A DNA stretch of 64,000 nt from Botryllus schlosseri (GCA_051294905.1 CM119375.1:19530001-19594000), one strand, 5' to 3'; positions 18,118-53,790 are shown, counted from the stretch's first letter. Notes: a model not told the origin generated them from the letters alone. Made by a program: numbers and translations.

Positions 18118-18894
18118 GTAAATATAGTAAATACAGCAGTATTCTTATACTGAATCTCGTTTGGAAGGTCGGCTTCCGTTTGTTTTCTATCGTTTACCAC
18201 GTTTCCTACACTTCAGAGCTGGGTTGTAACCAAATCAGAAAGCACCGAGTCCTAGTCGTTGCGTTGACTGCTCAGTTTCTAGTTGAAGTCCTGTTAAAGC
18301 CAACTCTGTCTGGGGATATCGAATGGTTCGCATTTGAAATATACTAATTTTCCTCACTTTTACCAGTTTCTGGTGGCATTTTCAAGTACCAGAGCCAGTG
18401 TCTTCGAAAATACATTGAAATGTCGGCGTTGGCCGTCTGAGACTCAAGTCATATGACTTATTACTATATTTTTTATTCACAGTAAAACTGGTAACTACAC
18501 ACATAATCCGGGAAGCAACCTGTCCCCAAAGTAAAAACTGGTAACTACACACATAATCCGGTAAGCAACCTGCCCCCAAAGGACAATGGCGAGATTGGAG
18601 TAAATTTTAAAATTTCAGTAATACAGGCAAATTGTAATTCCTGTGTAATTCATGGAGAAGTCAGATTACAGAATTGCAGTAGATGAAGAATTGTCAAGTG
18701 TAAAAATCGTGATAGTGGCGTTGATCACAGCACAGGTTTTGTGCGCCACTTCTATTAGAATGAATTTATATTATCCAAACATATATCATCGCTCAGTACT
18801 ATTGGCATACCAACATGCACATTGCACATTCAATACACGGAGCTTGCCGACACTATACAATATACAAACATGACATCAACACATTTGGTTAAAC

Positions 18895-23290: not shown

Positions 23291-24539
23291 GAAGTGGGCT
23301 ACATGTCGGCAGATACGGAACCCAAAATGCAGAAAATCGCCCTGGTGTAAATGACCGTTGTAGTCGACAAACACCATGAATCCTCCAAACAAACCATTAA
23401 ACATAATAAAGTTTAGGCTAACATCGAACTCCGAAAGGTTTGCCAAAATTCGGCAACGAGAAAATCGATGCAGTCGTGCATGATCGAAAATTTTCTCCAT
23501 TGGTGCGATTAAGCTACATAAACTCTCTGCTTACACTGAGTAGAATGAATGTGCTCACAAGTACACGTGAAAACATCCACCCATCAGTATGGTCTGGGAT
23601 CGAAGCCCCCGGAAGTTTGGCTTATCGCCCTGTGGGGGCCCAAGACCGACATTTTTGGGAAGGGTTGACGAAGTGCTTTTTCGGCCCGGATTTGTGGATG
23701 GTCGGTATAGTTGCTGTAAGACAATATGGTAGTCCCCATATTTAAACCAAAAAAGATGATACTATATCGCGAGAAGAAAATTTTTATGTAGCATAAATCT
23801 GCCCGAAAATAGCATAAATGTAGCATAAATCTGCTCGAAATGTTTATGTTGATTTAAGAAATATTATGAGCCTACTTCAAAATTCCGGACATTTAGGCAT
23901 ATTTTAGAAATTCCTCCCGGACGCAGTTTTAACAGTGAACGTATTGCAACCTACTCTAGCACCATATAATTGTAAATAAACGGTTGCATACTTTACATTT
24001 TGGCTTCATTTCAAATTTGAATGTTCACCGGTCCGCCTGACATTTTTTGAAATTTTACCGGCCCGCGAGGTGAAAAAGGTTGAGAACCACTGATCTGCGC
24101 TAGGGTTACCATATTTTTGTGGCTCAAATTCCAGACGCTCTTTAGCACCTACTACTGGGTTTTATCTGGTATACAGCGCACCAGTCGTGTGTTTGACAGC
24201 CGTGACCCATGACGGAAACAACTTTTTGCAGTCTGCAGTCTCCTGTCTCCTCCTCCAAAATACAGTGTGATCTTGGACCCCCATAGCGTAATCGATGCAA
24301 CTTCTGGGGCTTACTATATGCATCTGGTTTCTATGTGCATCTGGTTGATCGTGCTATAAGGGCCAAGACTACCTTTTTCGATGGTTGAGAAACGGTTTAT
24401 TGTGATTAACGAAAAACGTTTCGTTCTCAAAAACGCAAACAAACATAGACAAGCGGTTGTAAAAATTGGCTACACCTGTCAGATTAAAATCATAAAATCA
24501 GCATTATTGTTTGGTTTTGATTTTGTAAGGGGCCTTGAG

Positions 24540-24878
24540 TAGGGCTGAGCACAATGATTCGAGTACTCGAATCTGAATCGAGTATTATTTTTAATGATTC
24601 GAGTCGAGTAGTAAAAGACCATTTTTTCGACTACTGAAATTATACGCTCTGAGCAACTGAAAGTTAATTTACTAACGAAAATTATAGTTTTGGTACTATT
24701 TTCCGCTGATGAAGCCTTGAAACATTGATTAGCTGTGCCGCAGCATACGACATATAGTACAGAGCTACGAACGTTACAGGAAATAACACATTTCCGAAGT
24801 CATGATCATCCCACAATATTGTCAAAAAGTGCAATGAAATTGGAATGGTCGAAAAAATACTAAAGTATCTTTGGTACT
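24540..24878 (-). mobile_element. MITE family A copy truncated by the giant retroelement insertion
   Basis: Reverse complement of ~340 bp of the 8672-9185 copy; homology stops at gtatctttggtact|tgtga; ~170 bp missing. Confidence 0.85.
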
Positions 24879-25184: not shown

Positions 25185-26111
25185 GTGTTGAGTTTGGTCG
25201 AATCGGGTGCATTGCTAAACACACGGGATTGTGTGAAATTTCTGAGAAATCACGGGTTGTTGGTGCGAAGGATGAAATGCAAGCGATGTAAAAAAATAAT
25301 GAAAGAGGAAATTACGTCAACAGGCGATGATGGATTTAGGTGGCGATGCAACCCCTGTGACACTACGGCGACTATACGGAAACACTCGATATTCGCGGGA
25401 AGCAAGGTAGAACTTCCCAAATTATTAATATTGTTCTACTTTTGGTCCCATGACGCGTTGCAAACCCAAATTTCGCATGAAGCTGAGATTAGCCCACGTT
25501 CAACGGTTACCTGGTGCGGCAAATTGCGAAAGCTTTGTACGGCCGAATTTCACAGGAACAAGCGACGTTTGGGAAAGGAAGGCGGTTGCGTAATTATTGA
25601 TGAAACGCACTTAGCCAAGCGCCGGGCTGCCTCTGGTAAAGGACCAGCTGTTAAAGCCATTTGGGGGTTTGGAGGAATAGACAAAGCCACCGGAGAAATG
25701 TTCATTGAAATAACTTCTGACAGAACTGCTGAAGTATTTCGAAAACTCATAGTAGAAAATGTGACAGAGGGGTCCACAATTCTAACCGATGCTTATCCTT
25801 CCTACAAGGGCATAGAGAGCTGGGGGAAGGGTTATATACACGGCGTAGTGGACCACTCCCGATGGTTTAAAGATCCCCGGACAGCTTTTTGTACTAATGA
25901 AATCGAGGGGGCCTGGGGACAGCTTAAATATCACTTACATAGGTCTCGTGGTTTAGCACGTCACCTTTTAGCCGATTACGTAGGGGAGTTTTTGTGGAAA
26001 CGTCAACATCAAAAGACTGACCGATTCTTGGCACTCCTGCGCACCATACACAATGATCCACGGTATAATTTTGACAAATTTGATGGGTCTCCTGTATTAC
26101 CACATTTGTAA
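25185..26111 (+). CDS. Merlin/IS1595 (ISXO2-like) DDE transposase #1
   Basis: CxxC..CxxC Zn ribbon, IIDET / LTDAYPSY / NEIEGAW catalytic triad; no in-frame ATG at the 5' end, splice acceptor at 25160-61. Confidence 0.9.
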   Translation: MLSLVESGALLNTRDCVKFLRNHGLLVRRMKCKRCKKIMKEEITSTGDDGFRWRCNPCDTTATIRKHSIFAGSKVELPKLLILFYFWSHDALQTQISHEAEISPRSTVTWCGKLRKLCTAEFHRNKRRLGKEGGCVIIDETHLAKRRAASGKGPAVKAIWGFGGIDKATGEMFIEITSDRTAEVFRKLIVENVTEGSTILTDAYPSYKGIESWGKGYIHGVVDHSRWFKDPRTAFCTNEIEGAWGQLKYHLHRSRGLARHLLADYVGEFLWKRQHQKTDRFLALLRTIHNDPRYNFDKFDGSPVLPHL

Positions 26112-26240: not shown

Positions 26241-28757
26241 ATGGACATCCTTCCTTATTCTCTGTCTATCCTTGTTGGTATCATTTGTACGTCTGATTTG
26301 GTGCTGCATACGGCGGCGAAAGGCATGCACGGACTTGCAGATCCTGTAACAAGCAGGGCACGGTCTTTCACTCAGGGGACGCTAGGGGAACTACGGGGAC
26401 CCCTGCCTGAAGAATGGATCACTCTAAATGATACACAATGGGAGGACTATCACTTGATGAGCATTTTCAACAAAACGGCGGAGCGACATGTATATAGACG
26501 GCCTGAACTATTTTACAGCAAGTCATTTGGTTACGTAGTAGCTGAGCGTTTTTCATTACAACAAATGGCGTTTCCACATGGAAGATATTGGACAAGTGTA
26601 CAAGATTTTGAACGCACCTGTCTCTGTCAACGGCGCCTGGGCCAAATCACGCCCAATATTTCCTATGATGTTCTTAAACAAACAAACATGTTCATACGTC
26701 CAATAGGGTATTATAGGATTCGCTGGTTCTGGAGTGGGGACTATTACTGGTATCATGACCTTGGCAGAAATTACTCCATGTTTGCTCTAACCAAATTTAA
26801 ATTGATTATGATACGACTATTCGAAAGTTATTCAGCTGTTGAAGCCTCATGTCTTCAAGAGCCAATGAGAGACGGGGACAAAGAAAAATTAAGTGAATTA
26901 AATAAGTATAATGCCAGTAGCAATAGTTTTACACAATGCTGGCATCTAGTGGATAAAGATTATGCCTCCCATAGTGTTTTTTGGCAACAATACCACTCTT
27001 GGAGGGTAAAAGGGGTCAGAAAAGGAATCTGTACCAGGTGTAATTTTAGAGGAGTGATTTCTGCTCTGGAACCAAATAAGGCAGATATAATCATCCAAGA
27101 AATAGTAATGACTACAATAAGTACATGGCCGTATATGCGCGATAAGTTCATTCCATGCCGGGCCCAGGGGGGATGGATTAATCAGTACTGGTTTGAGCAC
27201 TTCTGGCCTGATGGTGGTGTAATAGCCCATTCGTGCAATTTCTGGCCAGGAATGAATACCACTATATGGGGTGATCTACCAACGACAAATTTTCCTCCCA
27301 GAGTAAAATGGATACAACCGTCTTTTCCAAATTTGGATCACAGTGTGTATGCTAATCGTGGCAATCAGGGCATGAGGTGGAATAACCTTTTTGATGGTGC
27401 GCCGACTAGGTTTAAGGCGTCTACATCAACATGGGTACCTTTTCCCAGGCCTATGTGGAAATTCTTCCCCTCTCTTACTGCATCGGATGAAGCATGTAAA
27501 AATAGAATATCACATAACCAGGATTTGTGCCGCGACCCTGTAGGAGGACGCATTTTGAAGGCAGCCTTTTGGGACCATGTTCATTTTGATCCGGAGCTAA
27601 ACCGACCACGCTTCCCAGGGGGACCAATAGAAATTAAAGGTGAATTGGTATCAAGTAATACCGCCCCACGGGGTACGCGTAGAAGGCGTAAAAGGTTCCT
27701 GTCAGGACTGATATGTCTCGTTTTTGCTGCGATATCAGCGATCGCCGTCGTTGCGACAGTTTCATCCCAGTTACATGAAGAAACATTGGATCTTAGCCGA
27801 CAAATCAATAATAGAATGATACAAGCCACGCAGAGGTCCACTGCACTAGGGAGAAAGATTAACGAACTCTCTCTTCTGCAAATAGCCCAACAACAGAAAC
27901 TGGATCAAACGATCGCTACCATGGAAATGAGGACAACGTTAACAAATAAACGACTTGTACTAATGGAAAAGTACATAGAAAGAAACCGACAAATGATAGT
28001 ACGACAAGCCACAGCATCCCTGACCTCTTTTCAAAACTATAAGGAAATGAGCGAAGCTGAACTGGCCCTTGATCGATTGGTTTTGGACGAGTTGGCTAAT
28101 TTAACTGGCAAGTTAATATTCGACTCCAGCAAAGTATATCTCACAAAAATCCGACAAGGAACGCTGCGGATAAAAGAACACGCTCAGCAATTAATAGCCT
28201 ATAGAGACGCTTACATCAATGAGACGAATGACATTGGGGTAGAGCTACGTGCTAACCGAATCAGTCTAGATCAAGCCCAACAGAGTGTGGATTTGGGTTT
28301 ACAAGTTTGGAGAAAAGATCTAAATAAGAGTGTGTACATGAATATTTCTGATTGGCGATATGAGAATATTACAATTAAGCCTTTCGAATTTGTTGGAGGA
28401 GAAGAATTTATGAATAACTTGGGCCAAACGATAGAAGACATGACACACGGTGTAGGAAGCTTGATAAAATCAGTAGGAGATAGCACAGGAGATCTTCTAC
28501 AAGATGGATTAGGTGCGGTCGGAGGAATATTCAATAAGGGAGTGAGCGGAATTTTTTCCGGCCTGGGGTCTGTTCTAATTCCAGTAATTTTGATATTGGG
28601 GGCCGGGATCGTCTTGTTTTGTGGCTGTCGTTATAGCAGTCTTTGCTGTCCTAAGTTAAAAACTGAGGTACAACGGCGAAACACGAATACTCAGTTGACA
28701 ATGCACATATCATCGGTATCGACCCCCGTTAAAACAGCCAAATCGACAAGAATGTAG
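26241..28757 (+). CDS. env: Class I fusion envelope glycoprotein (Env1), 838 aa from ATG 26241
   Basis: Signal peptide; RRRRKR furin site (27678-27695) followed by hydrophobic FLSGLICLVFAAISAIAVVA; heptad-rich region; Gly-rich membrane-proximal segment; C-terminal TM; several NxS/T sites. Confidence 0.88.
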   Translation: MDILPYSLSILVGIICTSDLVLHTAAKGMHGLADPVTSRARSFTQGTLGELRGPLPEEWITLNDTQWEDYHLMSIFNKTAERHVYRRPELFYSKSFGYVVAERFSLQQMAFPHGRYWTSVQDFERTCLCQRRLGQITPNISYDVLKQTNMFIRPIGYYRIRWFWSGDYYWYHDLGRNYSMFALTKFKLIMIRLFESYSAVEASCLQEPMRDGDKEKLSELNKYNASSNSFTQCWHLVDKDYASHSVFWQQYHSWRVKGVRKGICTRCNFRGVISALEPNKADIIIQEIVMTTISTWPYMRDKFIPCRAQGGWINQYWFEHFWPDGGVIAHSCNFWPGMNTTIWGDLPTTNFPPRVKWIQPSFPNLDHSVYANRGNQGMRWNNLFDGAPTRFKASTSTWVPFPRPMWKFFPSLTASDEACKNRISHNQDLCRDPVGGRILKAAFWDHVHFDPELNRPRFPGGPIEIKGELVSSNTAPRGTRRRRKRFLSGLICLVFAAISAIAVVATVSSQLHEETLDLSRQINNRMIQATQRSTALGRKINELSLLQIAQQQKLDQTIATMEMRTTLTNKRLVLMEKYIERNRQMIVRQATASLTSFQNYKEMSEAELALDRLVLDELANLTGKLIFDSSKVYLTKIRQGTLRIKEHAQQLIAYRDAYINETNDIGVELRANRISLDQAQQSVDLGLQVWRKDLNKSVYMNISDWRYENITIKPFEFVGGEEFMNNLGQTIEDMTHGVGSLIKSVGDSTGDLLQDGLGAVGGIFNKGVSGIFSGLGSVLIPVILILGAGIVLFCGCRYSSLCCPKLKTEVQRRNTNTQLTMHISSVSTPVKTAKSTRM

Positions 28758-28844
28758 TGCACGCATATGTACTCAAAGGATTTTACTTTTATTAATTAAA
28801 AATTTTTCATAAGTCCACAGATATACTAACTAATTTATAATAAT

Positions 28845-31800
28845 ATGAATCGTTACCTTAAATTATGGATTGTGCTGGCAGTAGCCTTAACACTACACCG
28901 AGGATATCTTCAAACTCATGGCCAATTATTGCCCCTGTCTGCTATGAGTGTGAGGTTAACATTTAATCTTACAGGATGGACAACGTTCCGGTATCAAGGT
29001 CTCAGATACATCCGCCTTAATCGACTATTCAAATTGAACGAGAGTTGGCCAATAGGTGAAACGGAAAATAATTTTCCAATATACAAAGAGACGCCCAAAT
29101 TTGGTCCAACACGAGCTAGCCAAGATCAATTGTACAAGTTATTTGCACCCTCGGGGTCTGACAAGAGGTATTGGAACAATGTTAGACAATACGAAAGAGA
29201 GTGCGGGTGCAATCGGAAACTATCAAGAATATCTCCCGATATTACTTTGGCAGCCTTTACCAGAACCACAACATATCGTCGAAAGAATAACTTTGGCTTA
29301 GTACATACATGGAAGTATGTGGTAGGAAGGGAAGAACATGGCACTATGGCTGTGCCAGGTCCGATCCTTCGGATGATATCTCCTAATGCTACTCCACAAG
29401 TTACTATACATCAACTGTTGACGGTGTACAAGTTATCAGTGATGAATATCTTGGCACAATATGCAACAGTGACAGCAAGGTGTCAGCAGCGTTTCGAAGA
29501 AATCGCGGGATGGAGAGTCAATAAAGGCGAATTTAACGTATGTGTGCACGGAGAAGACAACCAGATGCAATGCATAGGATGCTCATTTTATACAGAGGAT
29601 CTGGCAGTAAATATACTGTCCAGAGACTTTGTGGTCATGGAAATAGATAATAGCATAAGAGGATTAGGGACGAGAATGCAAGAAACTTATTCCTACAGTC
29701 AATGGCCAGTGGGAGTCAAATTACCCAGATTACATCACGACATCGTGTGGTTGAAGGCTCGAAATGAGACGGGCCCCAGGGAGAGGCCAGCAAACTTTGA
29801 TGGTCATACTTGGTTTAGATTGAGGATTTACGCCCTCCGCGAACATCTGAATAATGATACTCAACGGATAATGGGGAAGAGAAATTTTCCGACTATGTTG
29901 CAAGGCAGCATAGAATGTGAACGTAAAAAAAATCAAAAGGTTTGTCGAAATTCAATAGGAAGTTTAAAGACGGCATTGGCCTTTAAGGAAGTGTTATATG
30001 ATCCATATACAAATCAACCCGTGTATGCAGATCATAGCAATGGTCGGTTACGAATTGCATCTCCAAAACCTGCAGGTCAGGAATCTCCCCTCAAAGCATG
30101 GCCTAAGAGTCTACCCAAGTGTAAACAACCCGGTAGATTAGGCGACTTTATCCTGACTGCATCATTTAAAAGCAATGGGCAAAATACAAGGAATATGGAC
30201 TATTATCTAGCTCGCCTAGGAATGTATTACGTAGAAGCAACAAAACGGCGGTTACGCCAGTTATCTTTGCCCATATATAAAATGCGGAGAAAACTGGGGA
30301 GATTGGACAGGTCCATAACTGGTGAAGAGATGGAGTCTCTAAGTCAGGCGCTACGGTCAGCCTTGACACCTCAGAAACTGAGTAGGATAAATGAAGAATT
30401 ACTGAGCTATATGTCAACACGCAAGCTCATAGAGGTGCAGTTTCATGATATCCGGATATTCCGACCAAGTGTGGCCTACACAGCCACAATATGTGCTGGA
30501 ATATTGGTGTATACGCCTTATGCCTATAAGGACAATAACAAAATCAGAACTAACTCTGAAATGTCATTAAGTACCGCGGAATCAATAACGACAAAGGCTG
30601 TAAATTATGAAGGAACCACTCGAAAAGTACCTTCTAGCTCCGTAATGCCACGAAGTAACGCGGAAGCAATAACGACAAGGACTGTAAGTTACGAAGGAAT
30701 CACTCGAGAAGTGCCTCCTAGTAGCGAGACTGGTATATGGGTTGATATCAATTCTGTTGTAGCGACTCCAGAACCCGCTGTGACACGGGAAAAAACCATA
30801 ACAATTACTGAGGAAAATGTAAGAATGACGAATCAATACGACACTAACCACTATAACTACGATTATATAGAAGGTTACGACGAAGGAATTAGCTATGCCG
30901 GTTATGACGATAATACTAGTTTTCAAGACGCTGGAAATTACTACTACGATTATTATGACAAAGACGGAGAATATAATGTTTTATTAAAACATAGGCCCAT
31001 ACAGATAGCTTATACTACGGATTCTACAAATATTATTGAAACTACAATGGCATTACCAATGATTGAAACTCCAACATCAATTAAAAATACTCAATATACG
31101 ACTGAGTTAACAACAGATACGACAATTTCCACGTCAAAAACGTCTGCACATACGTCAGATAGTATTACGACCACTTTATCCACTGCTGCAATCACACCAT
31201 ATACTGGAGGGTTGACATCGGCTATTGCTATTTCCGAAACGACTTCATCGACATCGCTCCCAGCCATATTGACTACTGTGCATTCCTCACGCGAAGATAA
31301 CACCGGCCCAAGACCAACTACATCTATTATTACATTCTTAACTACGGTGAAAACTGTTCGTGAGCAAGAAAGACGCAGGACGAGTCCCACTGATATTTTC
31401 ACAACTGTGGAACCATCTATGGCTATATCAACAGAGATGGACACTCAGAAAAGCATTGGTATTGCTACGACAGGAGTCACCTTTTCTGAAAGTGGGTTAA
31501 CAACACGTGTACCAATGGCGAGAAGTGTAAAAGCAAGGTTACAATGGAATACCATGACCTATCAAATACCCTCAAAAAATGGTGAAATGTTAGGCTCCTT
31601 ATCCGTGCCAATAAGGAAAACATCCCAAATTACGCAGATACCTGAGTCTTACATACAATTAAGTCATCACGCAAATCAAATCAAGGACACGACACCGCCA
31701 AGAGCGCATTTCAATATGTTGTTTGATACATCACAAGTAGCAACGACAGTTGAAACGCACCAATACTTCGTCACCAGCAAGTCCCGCTCTAATACAGAAC

Positions 31801-32327
31801 CAGATAATTTAAACAAAAAGCAAGATCTACAGGTAAGAACTAAATCAACGTCAATAATTTCATCAGGTGACTATCAGAGCGATCCCACATCAGTAAGTAA
31901 AAATGATGTGATCAGAAGTTGGAAGAGTACTTCCAATAGTGCACTTTCTTCAATTACACCCTCTATCGAAGAAGAAGGAAAAACTACACTCAGTATACCG
32001 CATACCTTACCTACGGCCAGATATGACAGATTGGACCGAATTACATTTGACTTCTATGGACGATTGCACAAACTACACGAAATAGAACAAGGATATGCAT
32101 CAGGTAAAATTATTGTGGATATTAACAATAGAAAGGATTTAGAAGAATCACTTAACAATTATGTCTTGATTTTTGCGGTTAGCGTAACAACAATGGTAGG
32201 ATGTATGTATTTTTGTTATGCGAAATGCGGGAGAGTTGCAGCAAAAAATTATCTTAAAAAGGTTGTTCGGCGGAATAACCAAAAGATGTATATTACAGCA
32301 GTAACATTGCATGAAAAACTGAGATAG
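28845..32327 (+). CDS. Second type I membrane glycoprotein (Env2): Env1-like ectodomain plus Thr/Ser mucin stalk, 1160 aa
   Basis: Signal peptide; motifs shared with the Env1 SU part; ~500-aa T/S-rich region; TM YVLIFAVSVTTMVGCMYFCY; basic tail. Confidence 0.85.
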   Translation: MNRYLKLWIVLAVALTLHRGYLQTHGQLLPLSAMSVRLTFNLTGWTTFRYQGLRYIRLNRLFKLNESWPIGETENNFPIYKETPKFGPTRASQDQLYKLFAPSGSDKRYWNNVRQYERECGCNRKLSRISPDITLAAFTRTTTYRRKNNFGLVHTWKYVVGREEHGTMAVPGPILRMISPNATPQVTIHQLLTVYKLSVMNILAQYATVTARCQQRFEEIAGWRVNKGEFNVCVHGEDNQMQCIGCSFYTEDLAVNILSRDFVVMEIDNSIRGLGTRMQETYSYSQWPVGVKLPRLHHDIVWLKARNETGPRERPANFDGHTWFRLRIYALREHLNNDTQRIMGKRNFPTMLQGSIECERKKNQKVCRNSIGSLKTALAFKEVLYDPYTNQPVYADHSNGRLRIASPKPAGQESPLKAWPKSLPKCKQPGRLGDFILTASFKSNGQNTRNMDYYLARLGMYYVEATKRRLRQLSLPIYKMRRKLGRLDRSITGEEMESLSQALRSALTPQKLSRINEELLSYMSTRKLIEVQFHDIRIFRPSVAYTATICAGILVYTPYAYKDNNKIRTNSEMSLSTAESITTKAVNYEGTTRKVPSSSVMPRSNAEAITTRTVSYEGITREVPPSSETGIWVDINSVVATPEPAVTREKTITITEENVRMTNQYDTNHYNYDYIEGYDEGISYAGYDDNTSFQDAGNYYYDYYDKDGEYNVLLKHRPIQIAYTTDSTNIIETTMALPMIETPTSIKNTQYTTELTTDTTISTSKTSAHTSDSITTTLSTAAITPYTGGLTSAIAISETTSSTSLPAILTTVHSSREDNTGPRPTTSIITFLTTVKTVREQERRRTSPTDIFTTVEPSMAISTEMDTQKSIGIATTGVTFSESGLTTRVPMARSVKARLQWNTMTYQIPSKNGEMLGSLSVPIRKTSQITQIPESYIQLSHHANQIKDTTPPRAHFNMLFDTSQVATTVETHQYFVTSKSRSNTEPDNLNKKQDLQVRTKSTSIISSGDYQSDPTSVSKNDVIRSWKSTSNSALSSITPSIEEEGKTTLSIPHTLPTARYDRLDRITFDFYGRLHKLHEIEQGYASGKIIVDINNRKDLEESLNNYVLIFAVSVTTMVGCMYFCYAKCGRVAAKNYLKKVVRRNNQKMYITAVTLHEKLR

Positions 32328-32766: not shown

Positions 32767-35700
32767 GGATGGCGTAATTTTTGTACATGTTGCGATGGCA
32801 TATTGACGAACAAGAAAATTTAATTTAGTAGAAACGGCAAAATACGACCCCAATTGAGGGGTTGATCACGCCATTGCAAAACTCTTGCACAATAAGGCCA
32901 CAACTAATGGTGGGAAAGGAAGCGCTACAGTGGGTAATTGACGAACAGGAAATATTTAACTGCAGCAAAATGGTGAAATTTGTCTGTAATGGGGGGCTTA
33001 ATCATGCCGGAGTACAAAGGATAGCGACAAAAATTTGCTTGATGAATGTTCGGAAGGATGCCAAAACCCCACTTTACGAAAATAGCAAATTGCTCGTGGT
33101 GATGGGAGGTGCATGCGCGTTAACGTTCTTCCGCTCAAAACTGGATAAAACGCGGAGCGCAGGAATGGAAAAATCAGTTGACTCCATACCAGACTGTAAG
33201 GTGTTAAGGGAGTTGAGTGCTGGTAGTCAGCTTATCCATATATAGGTTGACACCAGTATTGAGGTGACTCGGGTCGACTTCTTCGAGTGGTTTGACCTGG
33301 AGCGATTCGCTTATAGGGAACGAGTGACTTGGTTTGACTCGGGTCGCATTGAGAGTCGATTGACTTGGACTTGACTCGAGTCAGAATGTGTGTTAACTGG
33401 TAATGACTGGGGTATCGAAGGTCGTGCTTTTGTTCCAGCACTAGTTGACACTCAACAAGTTTTGGTATGTCAAGATAATAGACCTGAATATAACTTGGGT
33501 CATCACGTTACAGACTGCCAATCTAATATTGCCGCGTGGAAACTGTATCAGTTATACCAAATGTTACTAAAAGTAGAAGAACTAATGCTCACCTTTCCAT
33601 AAAGGGGAGAGAGAAAATCAACGTGGTACTTATAGCTATGATATGAGACTTATATTATAATCACTCGCTACATTGATATTCTTACTATACAAAATAAATT
33701 CTAAACACTCGGTACTAATTCAATATAAACGCTGGGGTCCAACGGTTAGAATGATTAGGATTGCATGGGATAGCATGACATACGGGTATAGGCGTAAAGT
33801 ATACTACGAAATAGAATCACGACACGCCAAGATAATCCCTGTTAAGGACGTTTGAAAATACAATCATTTGAAGTAAATAATGATAGTAGATCTGGAATTT
33901 TAAGGTTTATAGTATCAGCCTGCTGTCGACGCGTTTTGATACTGTAGTTGTTCTTTACATAACTTAAATATAACAGTATTGGGTAACATAAGCGCCAATT
34001 TATGAGATTGCAAGGTGGCGGCCACCTCGTACAAAATGCTCAAACGCTAAAGTGATTTGTAATTAGTAATTAGTAATCAGGCGAATCGATGCGACCTCGT
34101 TAGAGACGTCTTCGATTTCGATACGCGCGTGTGCCAGGCGCGTAACCACGGGGATTTTGGGGTCGAACTTGCCTATTTGAAACGCGAAACCCCGTCATTT
34201 TGAAATGATCATTGGAAATCTAATATTTAGCTACAATTCAATAATTGTGTAATCAGTGTTCCGCGCGGCGGGTTTGCGAGAAACGAGTTGTCAATTAGCG
34301 AGAGGAAGCTGTGATTATCTCCCGCTGAGATGGTCGCGAAATTAGGTCATTCATTCCTGTGCGCGTGGAAAACTTCGCAAGCCTGATTTATCGCGTCTAG
34401 ATAAAGCCTGGTTTCGCAGGCCTAACAATCACATCTGCAATGGGCCCAGTTCACACTATATCATCGTTTGACTGCGCAATCACATATGCATTGGCGGCTT
34501 CGGCCTGGTGTGCACGATTTCATCGCTGACTCACACAATAGCATCTGCAATAGGCCTGGAGTGAAAGATTATTGCTGGCCTATGGCCTGACTATAGCGTC
34601 TCGAGCCTAACATGCTTCGGCTCCTATCTCTCGCGGGTCTGGCGACAATGCGGTCGGGTGTACGCTAATTAGTGATGGTATTATCTCATATTGCTTAAAA
34701 GGTGACATCGCGAAACTGAATAACATTGAATGATTCGAATGGAGGCAAACATTAACATGAGAAATTGATATCCACTAATATTGGAGCGTAATGATCAAAA
34801 GATGTGTGTCAGTACCATGTCTCGAGTTCTGGAATACGGCAAAGGTTTGAAATCCATCAAGTTAGGACATTCCCCGAATTTTTCCACTGACTACGCACCC
34901 AGCGTGGGCTGAGAAGCACCATCCTAGATCTCCTCTCCCGACCAGGAGCGCTAATATACGTTATGCTTTTCTGAAATCTAAATTATGTGCGCCCATATTC
35001 GTTTACAAAACTAGCTACTAGATACATTCGTACTTCGAAATTGTTGCACAAAGTCCTTTTTTGAGTGTTCCTTTCATTATTAACGTGATGCAGCACAGGA
35101 TTATTGGTCATAGTAGCACAAATTCTGATATTATTCGATTCGTTCGAACAGGGAACCTTCTACATTCCGATAAAATTGATTGCTGGATGAACTCGTTTCC
35201 AGAACAATATTATCGAATATTTACCCATTAGAGATTAAATAGACAATGGATTTCTATTGGTAAGATCGCGACATGCGGCTGGGAGTGGAATCAATCCTAG
35301 CCCAGGGGTGGCTAACACGCGACCGTAGAAAGAGATTTGTGCGGCCGTCAACACGTAGTTCAATTGGTATGCGTTGGCGGCCAACCCGGCCATCGACACG
35401 CAGATGGAATTTGCGAATTGACCGATGTACTCCCGAAATGCCTCGTGAACTTAAATTGGGAAATGCACCAATGTTTTAATCATCAAACAATTGCCGTGAT
35501 GCGAGTAGGTCAAAACGATGCAGAGACAATGACTGATTGCACGGCTGCGCGATTTCGCGTTTGTAATCGTCATTATTGTCAGCTGGAAGTATTATAGCGT
35601 TGTCGTGTGTTGCCTGCCAAGCCATGCGTAGTGTATTTCGTTACTCACACGGGGCATTGCGCGTGAACAGCGTTGATGTAACTGGAGATTCGTCGGACGG

Positions 35701-38700
35701 ACTGGTAGCGCAGGCCGCGGTTACACTTCAAATGATCGCACCGTTTTGAGATTCCATTTAATAACTCGACTGCATGGTTTGATATTAATGAGTGCAGAGC
35801 CGATATTAAAACGTCACGCGAATGGTTCAACTCTGCACGTACACCAGCGGTATGCAGTAAATTGTGGTTTCATATGACGAATGCAGCAATTATGACGTTA
35901 CAAGAATTCGCCGCCTCGTAAAAAAATAAAAGTTGGAGTCTATGTTGGGTAGTATGAGTAACTGCTGTAAAAAGTGGTAATTTCAATCAGCAATAGCACA
36001 ATCACCAACCTATTAAGTATCAGAGCTGCCTCACATTATGTACTGTGCACTGCGCAGGGTTGACAATAGCAGTTAGACTACAAGAAATGCCGATTATCTT
36101 TGTATTGGGCGCTACTGTGCATGAGTCCATGGTCTCTCGAGTCATTGGCCTTGAGCAACTGGATAATATCTGAGTTGATTCGGCATACCTGTTTATGAAT
36201 TGAATTTAATTCGGAGTAAAATTAGTGAGCCAATTTCAAGTCATCAAATAATCAAATGCAGACAAAGATTGTGGTATATAGCATATGTTTGGATTTTTCA
36301 CGCAAAGTTTATGGGATACATAAAAAGCGACCAATCTTTCAATGATAATGCATTTTATTGGGCATCCATCTGACATGTCACAAATATACTGGTCGCGGGT
36401 TAAGAAGTCGAAGTTTGCAGCCAATGCCATCATAAGCTATAAGTGTTTTATTTATTTTTGGCGGATATGATAAATTAAGAACGGTGCGTTTGCTTAAATG
36501 ACTTAAGTTACTTGTATGCAAGCAATACAGCGTATTATTTGTGGACTTATTTAACTCAATATATCTTCATCGGTTAGATACCGATGACCGCCCGATATGT
36601 ATTGCAGAAGACTAGTAAAGTATAATGATATAATCACGTCTTGTGACTAATAAAATCAATTCAATTCCAACCTTAGCTTGATTTGAGTCACTTTCACTAA
36701 TCAGTTGACTTGACTCGGCTTGATCGAAGGATGCGGTGACTCGAAGTGACTCATGACTCGAATGTTGCAGTGCTGGGATCGAGACGCGACCGATCGGTAT
36801 TTTGAATCAAAAAGTTTTTTTGATTTCTAAAATGGAAAGTGTTTCGACCCGGGCCGGCTGAGTCGCTCCAATTGTTGCATTCACTACATTGTGGCATTTA
36901 TTTACGTCAAGCAGGGAATACCGCTTCAGGAAATCTGATCTATCGCATAAATGGCTAACTTAAAACATGTCTTCCAACTGTAGGTACTTTATAACAACTA
37001 ACTAGACCAGTAAGTTGAGTTTACGACGAAAATAAATAAATCGCGATATTGTGACTAGGCGGAGTACAGTATTATATATGAGACAACATTATACATATAC
37101 CTACCTCGGTGATAACGGATTGTAGGTTTGGGGTGATCCCATTCTGGTACATCCATATGTATATTCCATGGGAAAGGTACGCGCTTTGCAACCTCTGGTA
37201 TATCTCAAGAATTACATATATCCCGGTTGAGGGACACTAACCTACAAGTTCCAGAAATTAACTGTACTTATACACACAACTGGCCTCACCGATCCAAACT
37301 TAAACCATGTGGCAAAGCAATCCAACAAGCGTTAGCCGCAACGAAGACGAGTAGCATGGATAGCTTCCTGTACTGTCAAAATTATATTAAGCTACGAGCC
37401 GTATAATACTGAATAATAACAATTCTACTCAAGACGCAAAGTGATTGATTTCCTTCAAAGCTTTTAAGCTACTGAGGCTAAAATATTGGAATTGTTCTCG
37501 AAGTTTTCTTAGGAAAAGTATTGCTGATATGGACATGGTAACTAAAATTGTGTGACAGGAGCCATCCCAATTAATGGTTCCTTCTAGAATACCTGACAGG
37601 ATGGAACGTTATTTGGGGTGATTCTAGTCATGCGCATTCGTATATATGAATAATAAGGGAATATAACAAAATCGAGGTTAGTTCGAGTCATGGTACATTC
37701 TCATTGACACAATAATGACCTGTATACTGAACATTATCTTTTTTTGTAACTAGGGCTAGCTCAAACGCTGATTATAAGAACTCGGCGACCTTATATAAGA
37801 ATTTAAAAATAACTGCGACGAGAATGATGAGATTGAAGTTGGTATTAATATTATTGTTTCTAATTTCAAAACAACCTATCCGCACATTCTCGACAATACT
37901 ATTTAGTACTTGACAATTCTGACATTAGATTTAATTTGCAAAACGCGCAAGTTCATCTTGGTGTATAAGCTTTAAGAAGTATCGTTGGCCGCTGTATACA
38001 GTCTATTGTCGTCTCAAATGCATAGGTGATACTGAATTAAAAAATAGATAGTCTGAACAAAACCGATCAATTTCGATATGAAAGCTAGTTTAATCTTTCG
38101 CGCACCCCTTTTGGTACTGCGGTTCTAATTTACTATGACTGATACATTGCGTATTACTAATGTAAGGAAAGAAACAGTGTTGGGAGGACTCGAGTCGATT
38201 GGAAAATATGTATTGACTCGTGTCTCGAAGAGGAATTTATAAGTTAATATCAAGTCACAAAATAAACGGTGTCAAATAAATCACTGTAGCTTGCGTATAC
38301 TCGAATTGTTGTGTTAAGTCATAAATGAATTAACCGCAAATGAAACGATCATGGCTGACGCTGCCGTGGTAATTATAGAGGACTATTGTGAATAACAACA
38401 TTTTTCTGTCTCATTAGACGACTCAATATTTACGTTGTGCAGGGCGTATCTTTCTATATTTTGGTTGACAATGCCTGACTGTAGTATTTAGCCTTACAAT
38501 TACTCACGTATTCTACTTGCGCGTGACTGATACAGTATCTGGGTGCATGTATAGTTATTTGCATATTTGACAGCTAATTCAATATAGATGCTGAAATCCG
38601 GTTGAATTGAATTGAACCCAACATGGGTGCAAGGTATTGTCTCAAAAAGGCCTGTGCTGAAGTAGTATGTTCCTCAAAAATTAATAATATTTTTGAAAAC

Positions 38701-41700
38701 CAAACAAAACCGTTGGTTTATCGCCGACGAGTAAATAAACAGGTGAAATATCTATCTCAATCGAAGGGTATAAAGTATCACACTAAGGTAACATAATACC
38801 ACGTTGCTCGCTCTCCTATGTTCTAGCTCACGCTGAACCATAAACCTACATTTGCGAAAGCTGGTCTTCAGTTCATTGTATTACGGATTTGGTACATCCC
38901 TGTAAATACCGTTCGAAGGTTACCATATATTGCAAGTTTTGATATATCTCATATTAAGCAGTAACTCCGTTTGAAGAATTCTGGTCTATAATTTCAAAAC
39001 TAAATTGTGCTTTTGCGGACAACTCAGGTCATCCTAGCTAAAATCTGATGCAACTATACGACGCCAAGCATGCAATGGAGCAATGCCTAGCCGTATTGAG
39101 TGACTTCCTGAAATGGACTAACTCCCATTGCAGTGTGAGGCGAATATTATTGATTACTAACAATTGTGTACGTCATAACACAAAAGGGCTATAAAATTGT
39201 AAATCTACTGTAAGCCATGACAAACTTCGGCTTTGATAGATCGCACTGTTTTCAAATCCTTCTTGCGTACTGGATTACTAAAACAGGAAAAAATGTGCTT
39301 GCTCGTGCCCTATTGGAAATGTCCATTTCAAAACTAGTGTGTTGGAGATCTCTACAATATCTCTTCTACTACTAGTGTGTTCTAAGTGTTTGGACATGAT
39401 TAAAATTCACTAGAAATTGTCGTGCGGGTATGGTAATTTGGGTAATGATAGCTGCCTCCGCCAACCGGTCTCTCCAAAATATTTGAAACGATGGAACAAT
39501 TGCTTGAGGCAGTTATAGGATTTTTTGCGCTAGTCACCTTGTGATTAAATTAATCTAGGAGCACTAAGCTGAAATAGATGAGAATGTTATTTTCTCATAT
39601 CACGCCTCAAATGTCAGGAAGTTACAAGTAAGTGAAATTAAGAGCAAGGTATCGGGTTTGCGCCAGTAATAGTGGTGGGCAAACTAATTAGGTAGTCTTA
39701 AAAATAAATGTAAATTTGGCCAGATTTAAAAATACCCAAGCGAGTAGGTAGATTACAAAACATTACTACGAGAAACTTGGGTAGTGATAGATGTTTGTTT
39801 TCGATAATAGCCATTAGCATGTATGTAGCACAGGTATTTTATTTAAAAGTAACTATTGTTGCGAGTCGGCATTTACAAAAGTAAGTTTTGCGTATTGGAG
39901 ACGGCGCATGAATTGTAGATAATTCAGCAGCGTAAACGCTAGTTTGTTAGTGTTGAGCAGTAATGCGAAGTTTGTAGTATCAAAGAACAAACAAAAGATA
40001 TGATAATTAAGGAAAGCCATTGATTTCTGAGGGTAGCAAGATTTGCATTTTGGGATTATAGTTTGCAGAAGTAATTATTTGGGACAGATTGGGTGCGAAA
40101 AGATAGTTTATTGATAATGTATCAACAATAGTGACCTAGTAATCTAGAGTACAATTACATAACAATATACAGTGGTGTAGTATGAAGCAGCGCGTGTTGG
40201 TTTTTGCATTTTCTATGAATAAGGCTGAGAATGGTCGGTGGGACCTTGCTAATTTGAGTGACTACAGGATAATTTGAATTGTTGCATTTGGCAGCAAGAC
40301 TATGCGAATTGGGAAATAAGTTTACAAATTAAAGTAAGTAAAGGAGTGATATTGAATTAGTGGATTGTAGGCGCCACCACGCGGCTGGTTTGAGCCAAGC
40401 AAGAATGAATGTAATCAAAATGGCGTAAAATCGTGCTTGGAAAATGGCGCATGACCTGCTACCACTTAATTTATGTCACTTTTAGCCTTGATATCAAGGT
40501 TGGTAAATGAATGAGCGCTTAAGGTAATATCCAAGTTAGATTGAATCAGTAAACGTGAGAGAAATTGTGGTACAGCCCGTAGCTTTTTACGCAGTGCTCA
40601 TGTTGGCAATGGACCAAGAACAAGAATTGTTGATGTATGAATGACGTAACTCATTGATTAGAAGATTCAGACAGCTAAATATCTAGAATTATACAGTAAC
40701 TAATTAGCTAAGTAGTAAGCGCATATCTAGTTAGTACTTTCTTGATTTGCGTGCCACACAGAGGATCACGAACCAAAAATTAGGCCTGATTTTTAGAATT
40801 TTTCGCGTTAACAATGATCAAACATGTCCATCTGAATCTGATTATGATTTATTACGCAAATTCGGAATTGATAACAAAAAAAGAATGGCATGCCCCATGC
40901 ACTGAGGCTATATCTCATATACCGGCGGTTCATGATTATAAGGAAGTAAACCGAGTTTAGAATGTAGGTTGATGACTTGGTATCTGAAGGAGGCATGAGT
41001 TATAGTTTCATTAAGGGTGTATTAGAGATGGAATACAGGCCATACGACAATTAAAATAACATAGTCATACTCCATGTATGTATTTAAGAAAATTAGAGTT
41101 GGGGTAAGATAGCACGAACTTGGTGATGAAGTGTTGGACATAGTAATAACGGTACTGAATGAGGGCTATGAACTGAGCAATAAAGGCATAGATCCCTATA
41201 ATTTGATATTAACACCGAAAGATAGGTGCGTTAGGTAAGCGATGACCCGTCACAAAGATCTGGTATTTAATGGCCAATTGGTACAATTGTTTGACAATAA
41301 AAGAACTTGTAATAGATCAGAAGGTCGCAGCTTGGTATTTCGCTAACCAAGCAAGTATGGTTATGAAAACCATTGGCATTCTGTTAGTTACATCTTTGGT
41401 CGCTAAATCATGTTATTAGGGCCACTTAAAGGTACCGAGTACTGTAGTGGTACGCTCCAACGATGTAACAGCAATAGGACGTCCGGCGTTCCCACATTTC
41501 AATCACTAGGACACATTCATTAATATATTTATATTATATTTATATTTTTTTTCTGCTCCTATATTTGAAGATATTTGGCCATGAGATTAATAGCCTACTT
41601 CTCAAAAGTATACCCGAATCGTGATTGGAATTACAATGATCAGATCAGACTCTGTTATCGGTCTGTTGGATCCAAAATATTCATAGTAGCTGAAAATTAT

Positions 41701-42433: not shown

Positions 42434-42955
42434 ATGACAAGTTCTGATGCCATGGAAGCCTCTGTTCTGGATGAACAAATCTGGACTGGAAGGTGGATTG
42501 TTGTATTAAAAAATATAGATGAAATTCTCAAATCATGCCAAACATCGCCTGAAGCAGATGAAAATGAGGAAAATGAACAAGAAATTGACGAGGCCACTTT
42601 GGAAAGCTATTTTGAAAGAAACCCTTCGATCTGGGGAGATGATACGGACTCGGAATTAGATCTCACTGACTCAGATGAAAGTTCGAGTATTTTGTCTGGC
42701 TCCGGATATGATTCTGGACATGATTGGATAGAGTCCTATCTTTTCCCAGACCACGAGTTGAGAACTTATCCGAATTCCGAATCTAGTGATTTGACAGATT
42801 CGAATGAAAGTTTGAATACTCTACCCGATACTGACTCTGGTGTTAGTAGTAGCGATTCCGATCCATCCTCAGATCATGAACAGTTACGACCTCTTGACGA
42901 GGCAACTCTCAGGCGCCTTGATAGAATGTTTTGGCGCCCCTGGAATAACGAGTAA
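42434..42955 (+). CDS. Acidic Ser/Asp-rich protein with sub-terminal WRPW motif
   Basis: 173-aa ORF; ends RMFWRPWNNE; acceptor tttccacag at 42364-72. Confidence 0.65.
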   Translation: MTSSDAMEASVLDEQIWTGRWIVVLKNIDEILKSCQTSPEADENEENEQEIDEATLESYFERNPSIWGDDTDSELDLTDSDESSSILSGSGYDSGHDWIESYLFPDHELRTYPNSESSDLTDSNESLNTLPDTDSGVSSSDSDPSSDHEQLRPLDEATLRRLDRMFWRPWNNE

Positions 42956-44097
42956 AATTGGAAAACTATGTGATCAAAATGTATAAATTGATGTGATCAG
43001 AAAAATCGTAAATGTACATTAATTACGTTGCGACTGTTACAAGAGATGTTGTGTTTTCTGTGCCTCATAGTGAAACAATTAAATACTGAGGACGACTGTG
43101 TTGTCGTTTGAAAAAGGGAATTTTTGTGTAACCATGGAATAATGACAGGTTATTTGGCAGATGTTAAGAGAGAGAGAACAATTAGGATGGTATGTGATAC
43201 AAAATAAAAGTTTGAATTAGTCAAGGCTGGGCAATCTTTTTCAGCCCGAAGGTCACATTCGATTGACGAAATACTGTGCATGCCACTACCGCGCGAAGCG
43301 CGAAAAGCTTTTGAAGTTCATAGAACAATGATATTATAACTTGGCATTGTTGCGGGCTTACCGTACACCGTTAGGCTGAGTTTACGCGGACCAGGCTATG
43401 TGGCGCATGGCCATAGTAATAACAAAAGCCAACATGCGTCAATCTTTCCGTATCTGGGTTTCATAGTCAGCAATATTACCGCAAACGCAAACGCAAGGTC
43501 ACACATGTTCAACGACACCTTGGTCCGAAATCGCGAGTATAGTTAGGCTCAGTCTGAATAAATTGGCCGTTTTTCCATGGTCATAAGATGGGCAACAGTA
43601 TTAAAAACAAGGAATCGTGTGGCAAAATATTGTGTTTAGCTTGTGAAAATTTTGTTTTTGATGTATCTGGTGCAAATTATTCTGCTTGATGGTAGTGTAT
43701 AAAAATATACCATTATGTGACTGGCTGATGGATCTGCCAATACGTAGGAATAGATATTTTAGTCATCACATCCAAACAAATATAAATTTTGCTCGACCTT
43801 GCAAGTTCCCAATCAGTGCAATCCATTCTAGATATTGGCAATTTCGGAAATTACCTCGGGGGCCACGAATTGGCCGGCCCTGAGTTGAGGAAATCAAGAA
43901 TTGTTAGGCTGACAAATGGCCAAAGATAACACTTTTCTTCACCCGGTAAAGGAATAATTAACCCCAAATAAGATTAATAAAGAGTTAGCACGATTCAGTG
44001 TTTTGAATATCATTAACGATATCTTACAATAATCTCGACTTAAAGAAACATTATTATTTTTAAGGTGTAAAAATAACGCGGTGTCGTAAATTAAAGA

Positions 44098-44616: not shown

Positions 44617-44776
44617 TGAAAAATATTCAGTGGAATGATGTGAATATTATCAATTATATGGAGTGAATATATGGTGAATAAAAGCTAGTTTATTAACTTG
44701 TGCCTAAAGGATATTATGAATGACGAGGGATTATCTTGTTTTAAGTTGATAAATAGTGAACTAGTTAAAGAAAGAA

Positions 44777-47591: not shown

Positions 47592-47677
47592 GTAATGACA
47601 ACGACTGTAAATAAGATTTTGACTTACAAAGGACACTTTTTCGAAGGTATAGAGTAACAAAGTGGGTTATCTAATTC

Positions 47678-53785: not shown

Positions 53786-53790
53786 GAGGA

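Follow-up and report, generated by a model that had tools for sequence, protein, structure and literature searches.

Results

The window that we analysed is a stretch of 64,000 nucleotides of Botryllus schlosseri DNA (GCA_051294905.1, CM119375.1:19530001-19594000), in which two neighbouring genes on the plus strand encode related putative surface glycoproteins. The first, Env1, runs from an ATG at 26241 (or a GTG at 26214) to 28757 and encodes 838 amino acids, and the second, Env2 (28845-32327), encodes 1160 amino acids. Both open reading frames are uninterrupted, and all three pairs of colinear motifs on which the original prediction had based the relationship of the two ectodomains are found in the translations. 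The observation of two paralogous envelope glycoproteins is thus confirmed.

The absence of a significant alignment between the two N-terminal domains had been named in advance as an outcome that would speak against paralogy, and the comparison gave the opposite result. BLASTP returned two colinear segments (E 1e-9 and 5e-4), and hhalign of an Env1 profile against Env2 gave a probability of 98.3% and E 2.3e-14 over 282 columns. When Env2 together with its orthologue, P0022, was aligned with 23 Env1-family proteins, the probability was 100% and E 1.4e-46 over 459 columns, joining Env2 residues 39-561 (28959-30527) to Env1 residues 53-649. Moreover, eight cysteines of the Env1 ectodomain (127, 129, 204, 233, 264, 267, 419 and 430) are matched by cysteines in Env2 and P0022. 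In correction of the original prediction, the homology does not stop at the N-terminal domain but runs on through the former cleavage region and a shortened helical region of Env2.

Env1 has the organization of a type I membrane precursor, with a signal peptide (hydrophobic N-terminus at residues 3-26), 11 N-x-S/T sites and a membrane anchor at about residues 766-803 (residues 769-802, 28545-28646, followed by a 36-residue tail). The surface-subunit-like domain shared with Env2 (residues 53-460, 26397-27620) carries the eight conserved cysteines and was modelled by AF2 with pLDDT of 85-97 over most of residues 60-300 and 410-470. It is followed by a polybasic furin-type site (residues 480-485, 27678-27695) and a hydrophobic stretch (residues 484-512), of which the part directly after the site (residues 486-512, 27696-27776; Kyte-Doolittle peak 2.67-3.03) is a candidate fusion peptide. 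The R-x-K/R-R motif is present at the aligned place in 24 of 27 Env1-type relatives, and a comparable hydrophobic peak occurs after it in most relatives; actual cleavage was not examined. The helical core of the membrane subunit (residues 486-693, 27696-28319) is predicted to consist of a long helix, a short beta hairpin and a second helix (H486-602, H605-620, E625-650 and H652-693, at low to medium confidence), and a heptad signal was detected at residues 520-556 and 707-763. Env1 has no cysteines between residue 493 and the membrane anchor.

Modelling of the C-terminal half of Env1 as a trimeric class I hairpin had likewise been set out as a test of the original prediction. The model obtained is of a monomer, with pLDDT of about 40-70 in the membrane subunit, and a Foldseek search found nothing at E <= 0.001 in PDB or BFVD; together with the heptads and predicted helices, this neither establishes nor excludes a six-helix bundle, so that a class I fold is not shown.

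Env2 is also a type I protein, with an N-terminal signal-like segment and an anchor at residues 1106-1126 (32160-32222), followed by a 34-residue basic tail. It has neither an R-x-K/R-R motif nor a second hydrophobic stretch, and the maximum 15-residue hydropathy at the fusion-peptide position is 0.13, against 2-3 in Env1-type proteins; P0022 lacks both the motif and the peak as well. The region homologous to Env1 comprises the surface domain, a degenerate cleavage and fusion-peptide region, a shortened helix and the hairpin motif. Downstream of it lies an S/T-rich, mucin-like stalk (residues about 565-1050, 30537-31994), in which the S+T+P fraction is 0.26-0.54 per 50 residues over most of residues 550-1050, and which contains a Tyr/Asp-rich stretch near residues 665-712. 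The composition of this long region fits that of a mucin-like domain, although O-glycosylation itself was not measured; no tandem DNA repeats and no Pfam hit were found in it.

Since the homology continues through the helix that follows the fusion peptide and through the hairpin motif (Env2 residues about 440-561), and a heptad signal lies at Env2 residues 456-498, Env2 might be a regulatory subunit which co-assembles with Env1 through the retained helix into mixed trimers and tunes or restrains fusion, rather than an independent attachment protein. We consider this unlikely, as the helix is shortened by an internal deletion in Env2-type proteins and the membrane-proximal part differs completely; co-assembly was not addressed in our analysis.

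The Env1 family is small, a search among 1.84 billion representatives having returned only 48 hits, coming exclusively from unannotated metagenome or read-archive assemblies. On one contig of a relative, an Env1-type gene (P0004) is followed by an Env2-type gene (P0022), in the same order as in the window and with a 97-nt spacer, against 87 nt here (31% and 22% identity to Env1 and Env2, respectively). A further gene follows the Env1 homologue after 82 and 89 nt on two more contigs. P0022 and Env2 share the region after the surface domain (BLASTP E 1e-23 over Env2 residues 7-587), yet in the surface domain P0022 scores higher with Env1-type proteins than with Env2. Orthology of the Env2-type genes therefore rests on architecture, the shared C-terminal extension and synteny. 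Both copies have been kept through long divergence, which argues for two functions.

The spacer between Env1 and Env2 contains a poly(A)-signal hexamer (28795-28800), which leaves open that the genes are expressed separately, even at different times. Because Env2 also has its own start codon, and keeps the whole surface domain with its eight cysteines but none of the fusion machinery, it could be a receptor-interference or decoy protein, which occupies or down-regulates the receptor in cells carrying the element (superinfection exclusion) or soaks up host recognition, without helping entry. Fusion-defective env copies act in this way in vertebrates (Fv4, Rmcf, Refrex-1, suppressyn). This possibility appears unlikely, as known interference factors are host-fixed single genes and not a conserved second gene inside the element itself, next to the functional env, and neither a 490-residue stalk nor a membrane anchor is needed for interference.

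Directly upstream of Env1 lies an IS1595/Merlin-type DDE transposase-like gene (25185-26111, plus strand; 308 residues from a GTG, with an ATG at 25272; Pfam DDE_Tnp_IS1595, E 8.5e-10). It is 39% identical to a second copy at 49556-50356, in which the same domain is found, and candidate D, D, E columns are invariant among three copies, but no terminal inverted repeats flank either gene, so that assignment of the gene to the IS1595/Merlin transposases is left undecided. The order transposase then Env recurs in another locus, L001, and on the contig of an Env relative, P0003. Downstream of Env2, an ORF-poor stretch of unknown nature (33300-41500) contains no ORF of 100 residues or more, no Pfam family and no remnant of the element's own genes, while the plus-strand G>C skew continues through it. 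It is followed by a block of about 16 compact plus-strand ORFs (42434-56543), which include an LRR protein, an IAP (3 BIR + RING), a UBC E2, the second transposase-like gene and several small paralogue families. In all, about 25 kb of accessory genes follow Env2, and poly(A) hexamers occur after 9 of 18 ORFs (P 3.5e-4).

Farther downstream, on the plus strand, a gag-like gene (58006-60822, 938 residues, Pfam zf-CCHC zinc knuckle) precedes a pol gene (60753-64000; protease, RT and RNase H; Pfam RVT_1 and RT_RNaseH), which is open to the end of the window. An 18-nt sequence starting with TGG (57680-57697), about 300 nt upstream of gag and unique in the window, is a candidate primer-binding site; its function is only inferred, and no matching tRNA gene is in the window. 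The gag-like gene is homologous to the gag genes of four other loci, L002, L004, L005 and L006. The pol is 38-48% identical to the pol of loci that carry an Env1-family gene after pol, an arrangement seen in L002, L004 and L005. The six closest pol relatives (40-48% identity) carry RT and RNase H domains but never the integrase domain PF00665, and five of the six also have a Tpt1/KptA-like domain, whereas more distant Ty3/gypsy hits do carry PF00665; the C-terminus of the window pol itself lies beyond the window end. No direct repeat pair was found around 25-64 kb, the 3' end of the window unit being outside the window, and none was found in L002, L004 or L005, which show inverted repeats or head-to-tail tandems instead. 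The gag-pol, which lies 25 kb downstream, most likely belongs to the next unit of a head-to-tail array.

This context allows other readings. As no gag-pol lies upstream of Env1 in the window, the relatives come only from unannotated assemblies and no known viral fold is matched, the two genes could be domesticated host cell-surface glycoproteins lying beside retroelement debris or, in a weaker variant, Env2 could be a functionless duplicate on its way to decay. We regard this as very improbable, since Env1-family genes follow pol in three independent loci whose gag and pol match those of the window, in multicopy tandem units 99% identical, and the family is tiny and patchy. Both ORFs are intact, and the Env2 type is kept at 22% identity, which argues against decay.

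It is also possible, though doubtful, that the 25-57 kb block, including Env1 and Env2, is part of a large DNA-level mobile element or integrated DNA virus using the DDE transposases, and not the 3' part of a giant retroelement unit, with the gag-pol at 58 kb being a separate neighbour or insertion. The per-gene poly(A) hexamers, the two transposase-like genes with intact candidate catalytic columns, the multigene families and host-like IAP, UBC and LRR genes, the GC jump from 0.36 to 0.48 at 58 kb, and the lack of accessory-gene homologues in L002, L004 and L005 would be consistent with this view. On the other hand, the Env family is linked to gag-pol in these three loci, head-to-tail tandem units in L005 reproduce the order env, small ORFs, spacer, gag seen in the window, and no DNA-virus hallmark gene (capsid, DNA polymerase, packaging ATPase) was found in the block.

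Discussion

The explanation that we favour, with moderate confidence, is that Env1 and Env2 are tandem paralogous envelope genes of an endogenous retrovirus-like element. In this view, Env1 is the standard entry protein of the lineage, made as a type I precursor and cut by a furin-type protease at the polybasic site, which frees a hydrophobic N-terminus on a largely helical membrane subunit with a cysteine-free ectodomain and drives fusion in the manner of class I fusogens. Env2 would have arisen by duplication of that gene, keeping the cysteine-stabilised surface domain and a shortened central helix, losing the cleavage site, the fusion peptide and the membrane-proximal segment, and acquiring an S/T-rich, presumably heavily O-glycosylated stalk of about 490 residues. 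It would therefore be a non-fusogenic surface protein that holds the same kind of binding domain far from the membrane, most likely serving in attachment and/or shielding beside Env1 on the same membrane. Our analysis demonstrates the paralogy, the loss of the fusion hallmarks in Env2, their conservation in Env1-type proteins and the conservation of the pair, while cleavage, fusion activity, glycosylation, co-display and the attachment role are inferred, no evidence on expression or particle incorporation having been obtained. One element thus seems to keep two specialised envelope proteins of a family not described before.

The original prediction, that a duplication split fusion from receptor-binding or shielding functions, is partly supported by these results. 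The duplication, the linear hallmarks of a cleaved class I-type fusogen in Env1, and the loss of exactly those hallmarks with the gain of a stalk in Env2 all agree with it, but that Env2 binds a receptor or shields the particle is not shown, and the fusion-plus-attachment reading is plausible but untested. The comparison with retroviruses and errantiviruses, which were said to use normally a single Env, is also off, given the absence of a flanking LTR pair, the lack of integrase in the related pol lineage, and the positions of the transposase-like gene and gag-pol.

A more far-reaching possibility, which is not excluded but which we consider rather unlikely, is that the pair belongs to an undescribed lineage of very large (about 40 kb) retrovirus-like elements without integrase and LTRs, arranged in head-to-tail arrays. 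One branch would carry an IS1595/Merlin-type DDE transposase gene between pol and env, possibly as its integration enzyme. The elements would carry host-derived anti-apoptosis, ubiquitin and LRR genes expressed as separate cistrons, and enter cells with an envelope family unrelated to the known F, gB and gamma types, perhaps a distant cousin of haemagglutinin; in that branch the envelope gene would have split into a fusogen and a mucin-stalked partner.

With class I viral fusion glycoproteins (retroviral Env, influenza haemagglutinin, paramyxovirus/pneumovirus F, F-type Env of errantiviruses) Env1 shares the type I precursor, the conserved furin-type motif, the hydrophobic peptide at the new N-terminus, the heptad and helical region and the C-terminal anchor, and in related loci the gene follows pol in a retroelement. 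However, no sequence-family or fold match to any of them was found, neither Env1 nor Env2 having a Pfam hit and Env1 having no PDB sequence hit, and the surface domain is a fold without detected relatives. Unlike in gamma-type retroviral Env, there is no CX6CC-type loop in the membrane subunit, and no TLV_coat or GP41-type Pfam hit was obtained. Neither Fusion_gly nor Baculo_F was matched by Env1 or 22 relatives at E <= 0.01, and no F structure was among the Foldseek matches, though model quality limits the fold test. No Pfam, PDB-sequence or Foldseek match to herpesvirus gB (class III) was found either. Among these 23 members the only exception to the lack of Pfam fusion-protein hits was one relative (P0032), which matches Foamy_virus_ENV at profile positions 913-972 only, that is, the anchor, at 23.8 bits, below the cut-off of 27; the PDB foamy Env also matches only at the anchor (E 0.59). 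The only hint was a marginal resemblance to influenza haemagglutinin, given by one profile (A2), across the C-terminal end of HA1, the cleavage site and the first HA2 helix (E 0.008-0.1), whereas a 3-sequence profile gave no such match and no HA appeared among the top 50 Foldseek PDB matches listed, so that a relationship is neither supported nor ruled out.

The proposed analogy to pneumovirus F and G is functional at most, and untested. In both cases one cleaved fusogen (in Env1, by inference) and one heavily S/T-rich, mucin-like surface protein are encoded side by side, but G is a type II protein, with a central conserved cysteine noose between two mucin-like regions, and is unrelated in sequence to F, whereas Env2 is a type I paralogue of Env1 that retains part of the fusion subunit. 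Filovirus GP, with its mucin-like domain, and the secreted sGP likewise share one N-terminal domain and differ in their C-terminal parts, and the long mucin-like region is thought to shield or extend the surface protein; there, however, the variants come from one gene by transcript editing, while here there are two genes, about 23% identical, and both products are membrane-anchored. In group I alphabaculoviruses, a fusion-protein homologue that lost its fusion function (Ac23) is retained beside the active entry protein, but that fusogen, GP64, belongs to another family, whereas here the putatively active and inactive proteins are paralogues; this parallel was not tested here. The vertebrate env-derived interference genes keep the receptor-binding part and lack fusion activity, as Env2 may do, but they are host-fixed and solitary, while Env2 is a conserved neighbour of the intact Env1 and carries a long stalk and an anchor. 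Finally, env-carrying Ty3/gypsy elements of invertebrates (Chary and Hayashi, eLife 2026, PMC13524379) are gag-pol-env retroelements in invertebrate-type genomes with a furin site and fusion peptide conserved in the env. That survey sorts the env genes it found into F-type and gB-type, one per element, on LTR elements, whereas the env family described here is neither type, is duplicated, and is associated with a pol lineage that lacks integrase and with no visible LTR pair.

Relationship between Env1 and Env2

The window contains two long, uninterrupted ORFs on the plus strand, Env1 at 26241-28757 (838 aa from the first ATG; a GTG at 26214 would add 9 aa) and Env2 at 28845-32327 (1160 aa). They lie in the same frame, 87 nt apart, with more than one stop codon between them and a poly(A) hexamer at 28795. 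The original prediction, that these are two paralogous envelope genes with colinear motifs, held as an observation, and all the motif pairs on which it was based are present in the translations.

A lack of significant alignment between the two N-terminal domains had been named in advance as an outcome that would overturn the proposal, and the opposite was found. In BLASTP the proteins gave two colinear matches, with E values of 1e-9 and 5e-4. An Env1 profile built from three sequences aligned to Env2 with 98.3% probability and E 2.3e-14 over Env1 94-460 / Env2 84-396, and when Env2 together with its orthologue P0022 (the product of the Env2-type gene on a relative's contig) was compared with 23 Env1-family proteins, the alignment reached a probability of 100% and E 1.4e-46 over 459 columns, Env2 39-561 against Env1 53-649. 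Eight ectodomain cysteines of Env1 have cysteines opposite them in Env2 and in P0022, and most of these are conserved across the family. The homology therefore covers the whole surface domain, and continues through the former cleavage region, a shortened version of the long helix, and a short hairpin motif shared by Env1-type proteins, Env2 and P0022. Retention of this helix might be taken to mean that Env2 is a subunit of mixed trimers with Env1, although we consider such a possibility unlikely.

Features of the two proteins

Env1 has a hydrophobic N-terminus, 11 N-glycosylation sequons and a polybasic R-x-K/R-R site at residues 480-485, followed at once by the most hydrophobic stretch of the ectodomain. 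The ectodomain of its membrane subunit has no cysteine, and is followed by a Gly-rich membrane-proximal part, an anchor at about 769-802 and a short tail. Heptad periodicity above 99.5% of shuffles was detected at 520-556 and 707-763. Among the 27 Env1-type sequences that cover the site, 24 have the furin-type motif, nearly always followed by a hydrophobic peak. Both Env2 and P0022 lack the motif and the peak (0.13 and 0.82, respectively, against about 2-3). Env2 then continues into about 490 residues rich in Ser, Thr and Pro (up to 54% per 50 residues), with no DNA tandem repeats, and ends in a single anchor (1106-1126) and a basic tail. This region includes a Tyr/Asp-rich stretch (window 30837-30980, Env2 aa about 665-712) which resembles sulphotyrosine-type acidic regions; a seven-residue motif from it, DYIEGYD, occurs also near the N-terminus of the product of the ORF at 46968-47591.

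It had also been set out beforehand that the C-terminal half of Env1 should model as a trimeric class I hairpin. The first AlphaFold model, based on 3 sequences, was uninformative (pLDDT 31.8). The second, based on 49 sequences (mean pLDDT 65.5, pTM 0.55), gave a confident mixed alpha/beta surface domain, with pLDDT 85-97 over most of residues 60-300 and 410-470. After the cleavage site it predicts helices at 486-602 and 605-620, a three-stranded sheet at 625-650 and a helix at 652-693, at only low to medium confidence and as a monomer only, which leaves the question of a trimeric core undecided. A Foldseek search of the model against PDB and BFVD gave nothing at E <= 0.001, the top rows being coronavirus spikes at probability <= 0.1, although the floppy helical half of the model weakens that test.

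Conservation of the gene pair

Env1 has only two relatives in the 90%-clustered protein collection, and 48 among 1.84 billion representatives when these were searched with a profile. A word-indexed search with the N-terminal half of Env2 found nothing, and scans of the IMG/VR and JGI metagenome collections found no relatives. On one read-archive contig the Env1 orthologue P0004 (769 aa, 31% identical) is followed, after 97 nt, by P0022 (722 aa). P0022 aligns to Env2 over Env2 residues 7-587 (E 1e-23), beyond the part that either shares with Env1. In the surface domain alone, however, P0022 scores better with Env1-type proteins than with Env2, and orthology of the Env2-type genes therefore rests on architecture and synteny. 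Two further contigs show a gene starting 82 and 89 nt after an Env1 homologue; the sequences of these genes were not examined, nor was the DNA of the closest relatives. Another relative, P0001, is an N-terminally short Env1 homologue.

The more distant relatives that were examined at the DNA level, the loci L002, L004 and L005, have a single env, which in L004 is in two ORFs (one break, of a kind that was not determined). The duplication therefore happened within one branch of the family, and both copies have been kept while diverging to 22-31% identity. This is the main argument that Env2 has a function of its own. A recent, decaying duplicate was rejected because the pair is conserved in a relative, and no broken gene was recognised among the named genes of the window. 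That the two are host genes, or that Env2 is a decaying copy, appears very unlikely.

The element carrying the env genes

The gag-like gene (58006-60822) and pol (60753 to the window end at 64000) are homologous to gag and pol of L002, L004, L005 and of one more locus, L006 (pol 38-48% identical). In L002, L004 and L005 an Env1-family gene follows pol, and Env1 is thus the env of this retroelement lineage. A classical provirus with env after pol was nevertheless rejected for the copy in the window, as no pol lies upstream of Env1.

The lineage is unusual. Its pol has protease, RT and RNase H, and the six closest pol proteins (P0050-P0055) carry RT and RNase H domains but never an integrase domain, whereas five of the six also carry a Tpt1/KptA-like domain (PF01885). 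The next-best hits, at 29% identity or less, are ordinary Ty3/gypsy pols, most of which do carry an integrase domain. The 3' part of the gag-pol unit lies outside the window. No LTR pair was found in the window, whether around the env genes or upstream of gag, or in any locus. L005 (1-23243) shows three 99%-identical units head to tail (13.8-kb unit), one of them with an internal deletion, and L002 (1-21868) shows one unit between 3.96-kb inverted repeats which carry small genes, including a PHD-finger ORF.

In the window, an IS1595/Merlin-type DDE transposase-like gene (25185-26111) lies directly before Env1, and a second, 39%-identical copy is located at 49556-50356. Both have a zinc-ribbon-like N-terminus, and the candidate D, D, E catalytic columns are invariant. 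The order transposase then Env recurs in the locus L001 (transposase-like gene at 1-615) and on the contig of P0003, another Env1 relative. It is possible that this gene stands in for the missing integrase. Relatives without it carry a CUB-domain protein gene between pol and env (L004 7242-8516; L005 6062-7075 and 13264-14043), while L002 has an unassigned 200-aa ORF at that place.

In our reading of the window, host DNA extends to about 24.9 kb. On this side there are an 8-nt microsatellite array (605-980), an N run of 154 nt (3784-3937), an immunoglobulin-domain exon-like ORF (17823-18347), and three copies of an interspersed repeat (8869-9185, 12409-12632 and 24532-24856), the third of which is inverted and lies just before the element. 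A partial unit would follow, beginning with the transposase-like gene and holding Env1, Env2, an ORF-poor stretch of 8 kb and about 16 accessory ORFs. The ORF-poor stretch (33300-41500) has no long ORF, no Pfam hit and no recognisable remnant of the element's genes, and the plus-strand G>C skew continues through it. The plus strand shows G>C and A>T from about 24 kb to the end of the window, unlike the first 22 kb.

The accessory ORFs form a dense, same-strand block of intronless ORFs (42434-56543), which includes an LRR_8 protein (47678-48727), an IAP with three BIR domains and a RING (51509-53200), a UBC E2 (54855-55334), a weak Bcl-2-like ORF (46968-47591, E 0.054), two PWWP3-C-like ORFs, and a four-member family of ORFs of 131-152 aa (53330, 53791, 55470, 56094), among small paralogue families. 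After it comes a 1.4-kb spacer. An 18-nt sequence in it starting with TGG (57680-57697), about 300 nt before gag, looks like a tRNA primer-binding site; this candidate is unique in the window but is not shared with L002 or L004, and Rfam and tRNA scans of the window were empty. An 89-aa ORF with a hydrophobic segment (57728-57997) ends 8 nt before gag. The gag-pol of the next unit would come last. The order env, small ORFs, spacer, gag is what L005 shows on a smaller scale.

Some observations speak against a single RNA-replicated unit. Between 25185 and 56600, nine of 18 ORFs have an A[AT]TAAA hexamer within 70 nt after the stop, against a background of 14% (P 3.5e-4), including the one between Env1 and Env2, which suggests separately terminated cistrons and is odd for a retroviral genomic RNA. 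GC content rises from about 0.36 to 0.48 at the start of gag. Moreover, the accessory genes have no homologues in the relatives. We therefore keep a DNA-level mobile element as a serious rival explanation for the context; either way, the conclusions about the two proteins stand.

The surrounding element, having pol without integrase, DDE transposase-like genes, about 25 kb of accessory genes and tandem units, hints at a kind of retroelement outside the current classification, which makes the origin and integration of such elements a concrete question for comparative genomics. Literature searches on integrase-less, transposase-bearing or paired-env retroelements, and on the sample accessions of the relatives, found no description.

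Possible roles of the two proteins and comparison with known systems

The most likely mechanism, which we hold with about even confidence, is that Env1 is the cleaved fusogen, and Env2 is a non-fusogenic partner that presents the same kind of binding domain on a long glycosylated stalk, for attachment and/or shielding. The homology of the two proteins and the retention of the pair come directly from the sequence comparisons, whereas the cleavage, the glycosylation and the roles assigned here are inferred; fusion and attachment were not assayed, and there are no expression data. A receptor-interference or decoy function of Env2 is a less likely, though possible, alternative. The original interpretation, a duplication that split fusion from receptor binding or shielding, is thus partly supported.

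Retroviruses and env-carrying retrotransposons are understood to use one envelope gene that both binds and fuses. A stable split into a fusogen and a fusion-dead, stalked paralogue within one element would be a natural case of subfunctionalisation of an entry protein. It would parallel the separate attachment and fusion proteins of some RNA viruses, but arise by duplication.

In layout Env1 works like a class I fusogen, but membership of any named family is not shown. In Pfam scans of Env1, Env2 and 22 relatives no member reached an envelope or fusion family; a Foamy_virus_ENV hit, covering only the anchor, and a Baculo_PEP_C hit are sub-threshold matches to hydrophobic or Gly-rich segments in single members. 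PDB sequence searches with single proteins and with two small profiles (A1 and A4) were empty. The 23-sequence profile (A2) gave a marginal match to influenza haemagglutinins (E 0.008-0.1), spanning the last part of HA1, the cleavage site and the first HA2 helix; this is a lead and not a result, because the polybasic site and helical composition inflate such scores. With no relative detected among the solved or predicted viral structures searched, the Env family widens the known repertoire of candidate fusogens.

The membrane subunit of Env1 has no cysteine loop, so it is not gamma-type. A recent survey of env-carrying Ty3/gypsy elements sorts the env genes it found into F-type and gB-type, and no mention of two env genes or of a transposase was found in its text (PMC13524379). 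The analogy to pneumovirus F and G, put forward in the original prediction, is functional only. Closer parallels, none of which was tested here, are filovirus GP/sGP with the mucin-like domain, the non-fusogenic F homologue kept by some baculoviruses, and env-derived interference genes.
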